From positions 23,560,001 through 23,624,000 of the forward strand of contig NC_088855.1 of NCBI RefSeq assembly GCF_963853765.1: a stretch of 64,000 nt of DNA, in the 5' to 3' direction. How positions within the stretch are numbered: position 1 is the first letter of the stretch; every line of letters begins with the position of its first letter. Position numbers and translations under genes: made by a program. The stretch comes from Magallana gigas (taxonomy: Eukaryota). The notes under the pieces are model-generated. The model worked only from the letters and a program-made list of their open reading frames with translations, did no database searches and had not been told where the DNA came from. Below, in pieces: positions 34,501 to 37,500 of the stretch.

Positions 34501-37500
34501 GTGCTAGACAATTGTCTCATTTCTAATGAGTCCTTACAGCTTTCTCAAAGGTAATAAGTAATGTGATTTTGGGTTTTTTATGCACCTAAAAATATAAATT
34601 TGGCAGAAAAATAATCGTAATAATATTTACAAAAATGAATCTGTATGTATGTGTGGGCAAAATCTGGGGATGCGTCAATGTAATTAAATTTTATATGATT
34701 AATCTATTTGAATAAAGTATATGGTTTCGATAGTATGCATATTTTTGTTAAGCTTGGTGAATAATTGGTTACAGACTCGGCGGAGGAATATACAGTGACA
34801 CAAATGTTGGTGAGTACTGCGGAATGAAAGTTGCCGTGACCAGGATCACTCTCAACATCCATGACGACCAGATGAGCCAGGAAACGTTAAACTGGATGAA
34901 GGAAGAAGTCTGGGGGCTAAGGTATACCGAACATACAGTTAGATAAACCAAACTGACCGATGAGATTTAAATATAAAAAGTTTAACTTCTTTCCATCAAA
35001 ACTTTAAAATTTTGAAAAATCTAAAAGTTTTTGAGCAGAATGGTCAGACGGAACAAAAAACCCACCCAAAACAATATGGGCCTCCCCCAATCTTCAACCT
35101 CTGGGGCGTTGACGTCTTGCTCTTGTTGAGAAAATTAACGTACACTGTACTAAACAGTCCTAATTTATGTGAAGATGTCCAAACGAATGTATTAGATTGC
35201 AATTTTAAGACGTTAGTAGAACTAATCAACAACGAATTTACAGAAAAAAATCATAACGCACCAATGCACTTATTTCAATTAGCAAACAGAGTCGTTAGTT
35301 GAATAACACATAAAAAATTCTTTAAATTTGATTTTGTGATATTTTTAGCCGTCAAAGACATCGGTATATAGTGTCGATGCTGGGTATATGTGTAGACAAC
35401 AGACTTCCTTACATTGTGTCCGAGTTCGTGGACGGACAGAGCGTCAAGTATTACATCAACAACAGCACGGAATCCCTCACGTGGCCACAGAGGGTTAAAA
35501 TAGTAAGGCTCTTCACATTAAGTATCCAATTTTGCAATTTATATAAGCAGCTTATGAAAATAAACTGGCTAGACTACATCTAGACCCACTTCTTGTAATG
35601 ACCAAAAATATTATATTGCATTATGCTGTGCATGTAGCAACCCAAGATAAAAAAGATACGACTATTTCAATCTTGATTAGTACGATACTTAAGCTGATTA
35701 AGAGGGATGGATGGTCGTGGCCATGTTTTAGACTAGGCCTATATCATAAAATCTAACTGAGAATAGAGTTCTGTATAAAGATACAGGAAACTGCTGTATA
35801 AAGGGAAATATTCGCCCCCGTTTTAATTTTACCCCTTTCGCCCTCGTTGTCAGCGAGCTAATTTAAGACTGGGCAGATTCCAGTGTCTCAAGTTACTAAA
35901 TTAGTATCTATCTTTAAACACAACTATACCTGGCCTAATTCTAAACGGGGTGAAACCGTTTGCTCGTGAGGAAGGACGAAAATAGCACGGGGCGAAAATA
36001 AACCTGTATACAGTATTCAAATTTTAAAGTTAAAATATTGGGAATTTTTGTTTACCTAAGGGTCGTTTGTGGCTTATAATAAAATCATATCTTGGATTTG
36101 AGGGTAGATCTAATGGGTAATTTGTCGACTATCCAGCATCCTTAACTTATATTCTGGATATCCATTTGCATTGCAGTGTATGCAAGCAGCCGATGGCATG
36201 GCGTACTTACATTCATCGAAGCCACCCACACTACACAGAGATCTGAGATGTGCCAATATCTTTATTAGTAATAATGACGTTGTAAAGGTGAGTTATCTCA
36301 ATCTTTCTTAAAGTTGTTTTTTTTATGAAAATAATCAGTCTATGGATTTTTTTAAAATGGGAATGAAGAGTTTTATGTCGATAATATTGCTCAAAAGCAT
36401 ATACATACACATACATACTATTATAAATGACTTCGCTGTGTTTATAATTGATTAAGAAAAGTGTAAACAAAACTTTGTAACATTTAGAATGCATTTACAG
36501 ACTGCATTGCTATTATTCTTTTTTTTTTCATTTCTAACATATGAGCCATTTATTATGTTATTCAATTATATAAAAATATAGAAACACAATTTTCCATAAT
36601 GAGTTTGTCGCTATTATAGTATTTAACGCCACACGTTTTATTTTTCTTGTGCGAGGAGTAACGTATATACTTAACAAAAAAAAAAAATTATTTTGGCATC
36701 CATACTGAGTAGAGTTGTTCTTTATTTTAGGTTGCCGATTTTGGTCTAGTAAAGCTAATACAGCCACTCAGAATGCTTTGTGATCAAGAGGAGTGTTGTT
36801 GTAAGTGTTGACTCAAAATTCCATCGCTTCAAACTTTGAACAACATGTGATTGCGTTAACGCATTTTCGCACAAAACACCATCGCGCAAACACAACGTCT
36901 CGCATCGCGTAGTTACGCAAAATGCCGTTGTACTTACGCGAGTTACGCTACTATCACTTTGTTACACTATTTGCTGTTGCGCAAACATTATAAAAGACAA
37001 CAATGCAGCAGAACAGCAACTGGCGGATTTGGCCATGGCGTGTTCATCTAAACTGAACATGCATTTCAACAACCGACCTTACCTTACACAACGCGCCGTC
37101 GCGCAATTACAATTCTCGCTGTCATGCTGAATCAAAATTACGAGAACGGGACGGTGAGTTTTGTGACAGCGCAGTAAGTCGCCTTGGTATGTTGTATGAC
37201 AACAATAAAGCAAGTTGTGCAAAGTTGTTTTGTTGTTATAAGCTGCAAAAATAAGCGCAACAGCGAGTTGTAGGACGGAACTTTTTCTGAACGCTTTTGC
37301 AATGACCTCGGCAGGAAACCGTATGTGAGACTTTTCTGAAAAATAGCGGCAACCTCCCAGTTTGGCATGCAAATTAAACCATGAATACTTATTCGAATAT
37401 TTATCTGAATAGGACAGAGAATTCTTTGCATCTGATTAACCGATTGATATTGATATTTAATTCATTTCAGGTCAAGGACAATTCAGTGGCTGTCCATCTT

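Follow-up and report, generated by a model that had tools for sequence, protein, structure and literature searches.

The gene and its lysine-less site

The DNA analysed here, called the window throughout, is a stretch of 64,000 nucleotides from the oyster Magallana gigas (contig NC_088855.1, positions 23,560,001 to 23,624,000, forward strand); positions below are counted from its first letter. Between 28538 and 38575 it carries, on the + strand, a gene of 13 exons (Table 1). This gene is the sole oyster member of a lophotrochozoan family of type-I receptors, with an MRH ectodomain, a transmembrane helix and a cytosolic kinase on the borderline between the tyrosine kinase-like (TKL) and tyrosine kinase (TK) groups. 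The kinase domain is without the beta3 lysine. No residue is more conserved in the kinase superfamily, and mutating it is the usual way to obtain a kinase-dead control.

The site lies in kinase exon 1 (34775-34921), which is complete, its acceptor being AG and its donor GT. Translated in the frame 34776-34919 it reads LGGGIYSDTNVGEYCGMKVAVTRITLNIHDDQMSQETLNWMKEEVWGL and comprises the glycine-rich loop (G-loop, LGGGIYS), beta2, beta3 (KVAVTR) and alphaC (KEEVW, with the alphaC glutamate encoded by GAA at 34905-34907). At the lysine position of the beta3 'VAVK' motif the exon has threonine, encoded by ACC (34839-34841) in the reading GMKVAVTR, in an alignment column that is lysine for every family member outside the pteriomorphian bivalves. 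A different lysine (AAA) stands four residues N-terminal of the site. Among the residues expected of a canonical kinase the beta3 lysine is therefore absent, and the HRD aspartate, the catalytic-loop asparagine, the DFG aspartate, the alphaC glutamate and the APE motif are all present. An earlier, sequence-only reading of this DNA had reported the change from VAVK to VAVT with HRD and DFG kept and an alphaC glutamate plausible, and both the exon and the family alignment bear it out; its codon argument is also correct, ACC being two substitutions away from AAA and from AAG. Compared alone with Pfam and with the sequences of the Protein Data Bank (PDB), this exon gave no match; it is too divergent and too short for such a search to be informative on function.

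By sequence, a pseudokinase is defined as a kinase domain without at least one of the beta3 lysine, the HRD aspartate and the DFG aspartate (PMC4718504). Because the first of these three key residues is missing, the oyster domain is a pseudokinase by that definition. In this sense the earlier label of pseudokinase stands; between a dead and an atypically active domain sequence cannot decide.

The change is not an artefact

The exon was present in 20 public runs from 12 studies, one of the runs being labelled oyster metagenome. In a DNA run from a separate study (X13), a contig covering 34764-35495 differed from the window at three intron positions only, and the exon, ACC codon included, was identical. 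In three studies, RNA contigs 1.5-1.9 kb long crossed the joints 34022|34325, 34550|34775, 34921|35349, 35502|36177, 36287|36731, 36800|37471 and 38108|38486; every intron skipped in them was GT..AG, and none of those joints occurred in the DNA run. The reading frames are all open, and every intron has GT-AG borders. The corresponding database protein is P0028, of 645 amino acids, which groups 97 sequences from public assemblies. Its kinase domain is about 99% identical to that of the window, on which the protein can be placed exon by exon.

In the 564-Mb genome we found neither a second copy nor an alternative version of exon 34775-34921. No family paralogue was found there either: a full-length query with the lysine matched only this gene at family-level identity (39-66%), and the remaining genome matches to the lysine-bearing relative were unrelated intronless TKL kinases with 22-31% identity. 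Neither a VAVK exon that could serve as an alternative nor a paralogue with the lysine therefore exists in the genome. The earlier reading had allowed that raw reads or another exon might restore the lysine; the identical independent exon, the RNA spliced through the ACC exon and the lack of a VAVK exon in the genome all go against this.

The data thus show a real, transcribed, single-copy orthologue of the family. The DNA and RNA contigs, the open frames, the GT-AG introns and the single genomic copy, together with the threonine or serine kept at the site in 12 pteriomorphian sequences despite synonymous codon turnover, refute the alternatives that the change is an error of base-calling or assembly, that the gene is a dying pseudogene, or that another exon or a paralogue supplies the lysine; their residual probability is negligible.

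The lysine was lost once, in the pteriomorphian ancestor

The beta3 column was tabulated in an alignment of 54 sequences, in which the sampling of Pteriomorphia covered oysters, a pearl oyster, mussels, an ark shell and scallops. The lysine was absent in all pteriomorphian sequences (12/12). Threonine occupied the site in the window, P0028, Crassostrea virginica, Saccostrea cucullata, Pinctada imbricata, Mytilus edulis, a second mussel-like sequence and Tegillarca granosa, and serine in Pecten maximus, Ylistrum balloti, Mizuhopecten yessoensis and a fourth scallop-like sequence. Lysine was found in the protobranch Solemya, in Potamilus (Unionida), in all Imparidentia, gastropods and cephalopods, in the chiton, in three annelids and in all outgroups. 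The motif accordingly reads VAVTR in Saccostrea, C. virginica, Pinctada, Mytilus and Tegillarca and VAVSR in the scallops. A database search with exon-sized queries for more species added only three close oyster fragments, all with AVTR. The earlier reading had asked whether the threonine and the arginine behind it are fixed in other bivalves: the lack of lysine and the following arginine hold in all Pteriomorphia sampled, and the threonine does not, the scallops having serine.

The taxa with threonine or serine coincide exactly with the pteriomorphian orders of established taxonomy. A maximum likelihood tree was built from the kinase domain after masking of the trait column; in it Pteriomorphia formed one clade (SH-aLRT 97) and one change of state was needed. 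These results show a single replacement of the beta3 lysine by a small hydroxyl residue, which took place in the ancestor shared by the pteriomorphian bivalves.

Codons were compared between the window and DNA from Saccostrea, Pecten, Mytilus and Tegillarca, in all of which the exon borders are conserved; the gene DNA of C. virginica is not on record. Among these five the site codons were ACC, ACC, ACA, ACT and AGT. AAA to ACA is one step, as is ACT to AGT, and the ACA codon of Mytilus probably points to a one-step route from AAA to ACA. Only threonine and serine occur at the site across five deep lineages and with varied codons, which argues for constraint on the replacement residue itself.

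The kinase domain has remained under constraint

Between the window and Saccostrea the kinase exons differed with a proportion of nonsynonymous differences (pN) of 0.076 and of synonymous differences (pS) of 0.79, the latter being saturated. The ratio of nonsynonymous to synonymous substitution rates (dN/dS) was about 0.04 for exon 34775-34921 and about 0.03 for the exon with RWTAPE; since synonymous divergence between species is saturated, the ratios for most exons are upper bounds only. Crown-to-tip lengths were 0.38 substitutions per site in the lysine-less clade, 0.48 in other autobranch bivalves and 0.43 in gastropods, and the pteriomorphian stem branch, at 0.13, was not long, so that no acceleration of rate was seen. 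Between oysters the kinase domain was 85-86% identical, compared with 63-80% for the ectodomain.

In the 11 pteriomorphian sequences compared, the first two glycines of the G-loop, the alanine of VAVK, the alphaC glutamate, each residue of HRD, the arginine of HRDLR (Arg125), Asn128, each residue of DFG and of APE, the alphaF aspartate and the arginine of subdomain XI were invariant. Only in oysters and Pinctada was the third G-loop glycine replaced by serine. Apart from the beta3 site itself, clade-specific columns of the kinase core were limited to the position four residues upstream (Lys or Arg versus mostly Thr), one in alphaD (Tyr, Phe, Asn or Ser versus Asp or Glu) and one in the C-lobe (Thr, Ala, Val or Ile versus Asp or Glu). 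Taken together, these data show that purifying selection on the kinase domain since the loss has been no weaker than in the relatives that bear the lysine.

Other lineages of the family carry changes of their own. In the Imparidentia P0051, P0055, P0053, P0040, P0044, P0047 and P0048 (Ruditapes, Mactra, Dreissena, Mya and three more) the lysine is kept and the alphaC glutamate is replaced by Gln, His, Asp or Leu, and in some gastropods the DFG glycine is altered (DFD, DFA, DFS). The pair is thus broken in a sister clade too, independently and from the glutamate side, so that the family has done without the canonical Lys-Glu pair more than once.

Search for a substitute lysine

Three candidates for a compensating basic residue were considered, and each was rejected. 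The arginine directly behind the site, offered by the sequence-only reading as a possible replacement, is invariant in a family alignment of 44 sequences, most of which bear the lysine (VAVKR, VTVKR); the only exception, a cysteine, is in the chiton, which lies outside that alignment. Its near-universal presence, lysine-bearing members included, marks it as a family trait and not as compensation. From the geometry of the strand, its side chain would face away from the pocket.

Relocation of the lysine as in WNK kinases is likewise ruled out. No basic residue was found in the G-loop or beta2 of the window (GGGIYSDTNVGEY, with GGGIYS followed by DTNVGEY) or of any pteriomorphian sequence, and the WNK solution is absent because these two elements hold neither lysine nor arginine.

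The upstream lysine (34827-34829) occupies alignment column 19, which is Lys in ten and Arg in one of the pteriomorphian sequences versus Thr in 26 sequences, plus other residues, elsewhere. Lys or Arg is also found there in the lysine-bearing relatives Solemya, P0008, P0013 and P0016. In the AlphaFold 2 (AF2) model of the kinase domain (pLDDT 90) it is the second residue of beta3, right after the beta2-beta3 turn, and would thus lie where the hairpin ends distally, past the side of the pocket that takes the adenine. A register shift that would make it the true beta3 lysine is ruled out by the AF2 strand assignment and by the VAV(K/T)R register, which is colinear in the whole family. In the sequence and in the modelled strand assignment we see no relocated lysine.

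Family and kinase-group affinity

The exon was compared with 1.84 billion representative proteins in a profile-free scan, complemented by two word-based searches. They recovered a single family, limited in these searches to molluscs and annelids (bivalves, gastropods, cephalopods, the chiton Liolophura, and the annelids Owenia, Ridgeia and Lamellibrachia) and usually present as one gene per species. In its members a signal peptide is followed by an ectodomain about 190 residues long, a transmembrane helix and the kinase domain. In the NCBI and UniProt databases they carry inconsistent automatic names (drkC, FGFR-like, Ror, PERK5, RAF-like). Full-text literature searches yielded no description of this family or of its lysine loss; a paper on the C. 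gigas kinome lists TK-unique and TKL-unique kinases and does not analyse catalytic residues (PMC4883820).

Full-length P0028 matches both PF07714 and PF00069 and thus belongs to the eukaryotic protein kinase fold. Among the single exons of the window, kinase exons 2, 3 and 5 pass the PF07714 cut-off and kinase exon 6 falls slightly short of it (21.1 versus 23.1 bits). The VKYY stretch of alphaD in kinase exon 2 contains the clade-specific change from Asp or Glu to Tyr or Phe. Outside the family, the nearest proteins share about 30% identity and are plant Raf-like kinases, Dictyostelium DRK and sponge drkC. In a comparison with solved structures the full kinase domain scored 103 bits with CTR1, 103 with RIPK2, 99 with the Src/Abl ancestor, 97 with BRAF and 95 with Src, so that the margin of TKL (97-103 bits) over TK (95-99 bits) is small. 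TK-like motifs are HRDLRCAN, close to HRDLRAAN of Src, and SLRWTAPE, close to PIKWTAPE of Src. The catalytic-loop exon (36177-36287), taken alone, has its best PDB sequence match in the catalytic loop of WNK1/3. The fold neighbours of the kinase model (P0028:325-640) are also mixed: Abl, BRAF, BTK and ITK. The mixed TK/TKL signature proposed earlier is a fair description given these near-equal scores and mixed neighbours, and we cannot assign the family to either group.

The ectodomain was modelled with a pLDDT of 91, and its roughly 30 best PDB fold matches are domains of CI-MPR and CD-MPR (E about 1e-6, TM-score up to 0.76). The model thus identifies the ectodomain as an MRH, or P-type lectin, fold. 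The literature searched contained no receptor kinase with such an ectodomain.

The activation loop (36731-36800 and 37471-37500) holds an insert between DFG and RWTAPE (QPLRxxCxxxDCCCQxxxSxCP), in which four to five cysteines are conserved. Kept across molluscs and annelids and absent from outgroup kinases, this insert could form a metal-binding or redox element.

In the AF2 kinase model, residues 166-175 form a short helix immediately after DFG. Among folds, the model is matched best by Abl in its Src-like inactive form (2G1T), by the inactive BRAF of BRAF:MEK1 complexes and by BTK/ITK, so that the modelled state resembles an autoinhibited, alphaC-out kinase. We did not count this conformation as evidence of inactivity.

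Function of the lysine-less domain

We favour, at a probability of roughly 55%, the interpretation that the pteriomorphian domain binds nucleotide, is catalytically crippled and signals by dimerisation, by its conformation or through a partner kinase. The beta3 lysine, or a lysine in its spatial position, is needed for catalysis in canonical kinases and is often dispensable for nucleotide binding (PMC4718504). The lysine-less domain would keep the kinase fold. Mg-nucleotide would most likely still be bound, since the pocket, the asparagine and the DFG aspartate are intact. Phosphotransfer, by comparison, would be abolished or strongly reduced because no lysine is present at or near the site; the replacement of the alphaC glutamate in Imparidentia points in this direction too. 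Signalling might then proceed by ligand-driven dimerisation, by a conformational switch, or by a recruited partner kinase, as in KSR and HER3.

Several observations weigh against this interpretation. No member of the lysine-less clade departs from the HRD aspartate, the P+1 loop RWTAPE or the activation segment, and such features decay in many settled pseudokinases; their retention also fits continuing catalysis. A basic residue, the lysine at 34827-34829 or another, could conceivably still reach the phosphates. There are also the precedents of WNK, PRPK and Haspin, all wrongly called dead from sequence (PMC4718504).

It is accordingly possible, if less probable, that the receptor is an atypical active kinase with lysine-independent phosphotransfer, in which the hydroxyl of the threonine or serine, the alphaC glutamate, the HRDLR arginine, metal ions, or a basic residue in cis or from a dimer partner might do the work of the lysine. 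The same three precedents favour such a kinase, as do the invariance of the HRD aspartate, the asparagine, the DFG aspartate, RWTAPE and the alphaC glutamate in the 11 pteriomorphian sequences, the low dN/dS (about 0.04) without rate acceleration, the restriction of the site to hydroxyl residues, the basic residue fixed four positions upstream in the clade, and a catalytic-loop exon whose nearest match is WNK1/3. However, the G-loop and beta2, where the substitute of WNK sits, are without lysine; the upstream lysine is modelled at the far end of beta3, adjoining the hairpin turn, and a basic residue is found there in the lysine-bearing relatives named above too. Sister lineages, moreover, break the Lys-Glu pair from the Glu side as well, and the beta3 lysine is reported to be absolutely required in canonical kinases (PMC4718504). 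The strongest form of the idea, a fully functional kinase that has worked without an active-site lysine since the origin of Pteriomorphia by combining the Thr/Ser hydroxyl with the alphaC glutamate and the HRDLR arginine, or by using a residue of the dimer partner, we regard as rather doubtful. If true, it would be a catalytic solution distinct from that of WNK, with the lysine-bearing orthologues of the sister clades as built-in controls.

At the other extreme, the domain could be a fully dead scaffold that binds no nucleotide and is conserved for its protein-protein interfaces only, which we judge improbable. It is a pseudokinase by definition, its third G-loop glycine is also replaced by serine in oysters and Pinctada, and the Src-like inactive AF2 model with its activation-loop helix points weakly in this direction. 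Yet the pocket is intact clade-wide, with the first two G-loop glycines, the VAVK alanine, a small gatekeeper, the hinge, the asparagine and the DFG aspartate invariant, and the alignment has no bulky residues that would occlude it. The dispensability of the beta3 lysine for nucleotide binding in many kinases (PMC4718504) stands against a dead scaffold too.

Comparison with known systems

Among the known systems closest to the oyster domain are KSR1 and KSR2, TKL-type domains in which the beta3 lysine is likewise replaced and the HxD aspartate, the asparagine and DFG are kept; structures of the BRAF family are among the best fold and sequence matches of the oyster domain. KSR, which binds ATP, serves for the most part as scaffold and allosteric partner (PMC4718504). 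It differs in having arginine at the site instead of threonine or serine, and it is cytosolic, with the regions CA1-CA4 and no ectodomain, and is not an orthologue of the oyster receptor. WNKs share the missing beta3 lysine with all other motifs intact, and the oyster catalytic-loop exon HSSKPPTLHRDLRCANIFI is closest, among solved structures, to HTRTPPIIHRDLKCxNIFI of WNK1/3. Unlike the oyster domain, however, WNKs take a lysine from the G-loop/beta2 region (Lys233 in WNK1). They are also cytosolic, and the similarity is limited to this one exon, the full domain being nearer to CTR1, RIPK2, Src and BRAF.

HER3, ROR, RYK, PTK7, EphB6/EphA10 and the kinase homology domain of guanylyl cyclases are, like the oyster protein, single-pass receptors with a kinase-like domain short of a canonical catalytic residue; they signal by their conformation or by way of partners. 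In these animal receptors HRD/DFG or several motifs are usually lost, whereas the oyster receptor misses the lysine only, and its ectodomain has the MRH/P-type lectin fold. The lysine-bearing orthologues of Solemya velum (P0019), Lottia gigantea (P0010), Octopus (P0014) and Owenia (P0106) share with it the exon structure, the order of MRH domain, transmembrane helix and kinase, HRDLRCxN, DFG, RWTAPE and the cysteine-rich activation loop, but read VAVKR or VTVKR at beta3.

Lysine-less kinases are already known; what is new is this member and a clean clade-level pattern with matched lysine-bearing orthologues. Evolution has made a substitution of the kinase-dead type once in a single-copy receptor, and in oysters, mussels, scallops and ark shells the rest of the active site has since stayed frozen. 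The lysine is kept in clams, snails, cephalopods, chitons and annelids, which provides matched natural pairs with which to ask whether the lysine-less domain binds ATP or catalyses, and what selection preserves in such a kinase. In the pteriomorphian receptor nature has thus set up a test of the abilities left to a kinase that has no beta3 lysine. To judge from the literature searched, the oyster gene also belongs to an undescribed family of MRH lectin-type receptor kinases in commercially important bivalves.

Gene structure and other observations

Table 1. Exons and key codons of the receptor kinase gene, in positions of the window.
Feature	Position	Strand	Content
Upstream exons, five	28538..33194	+	Signal peptide and MRH-fold ectodomain; approximate, from tblastn of P0028 (starts 28538, 29580, 30586, 31263, 33111)
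Transmembrane-helix exon	33861..34022	+	Encodes IILILGVNIGILVLAGCVGVTCY
Juxtamembrane exon	34325..34550	+	
Kinase exon 1	34775..34921	+	G-loop to alphaC; splice joints in RNA contigs from three studies
Lys codon AAA	34827..34829	+	Four residues before the beta3 site
Thr codon ACC	34839..34841	+	beta3 Lys position
Kinase exon 2	35349..35502	+	beta4-beta5, gatekeeper/hinge SEFV, alphaD VKYY; PF07714 E 1.7e-5
Kinase exon 3	36177..36287	+	alphaE and catalytic loop HRDLRCAN (Asp codon 36240-36242); PF07714 E 1.2e-7
Kinase exon 4	36731..36800	+	DFG (Asp codon 36737-36739), first half of Cys-rich activation loop
Kinase exon 5	37471..37661	+	End of activation loop, RWTAPE, SDVYSFG (alphaF); PF07714 E 3.8e-9; best PDB matches CTR1, BRAF, TNNI3K
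Kinase exon 6	37971..38108	+	alphaG to alphaI, subdomain XI Arg (NRPKF)
Last exon	38486..38575	+	C-terminal tail, stop codon

In the intron between kinase exons 2 and 3, the segment 35744-36067 showed a contig depth hundreds to thousands of times that of its flanks in 4/4 runs, with many loose ends and internal joints; it is a high-copy repeat or a transposable element. A GT-rich run followed by about 15 G begins at the donor of the RWTAPE exon (37662-37694) and was treated as a repeat in the read comparison. At 38558, RNA contigs from two studies have 13 extra letters, and the protein ends in KKKQVVIC in the window and in KKKQSSS in P0028; either an indel polymorphism or the use of another acceptor accounts for this difference in the last few residues. 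The deposited Tegillarca granosa protein P0004 is missing part of the C-lobe, SDVYSFG being joined straight to later sequence. The Tegillarca genome holds the full C-lobe exon (L018 15890-16075), so the gap is one of annotation and not a truncated gene.

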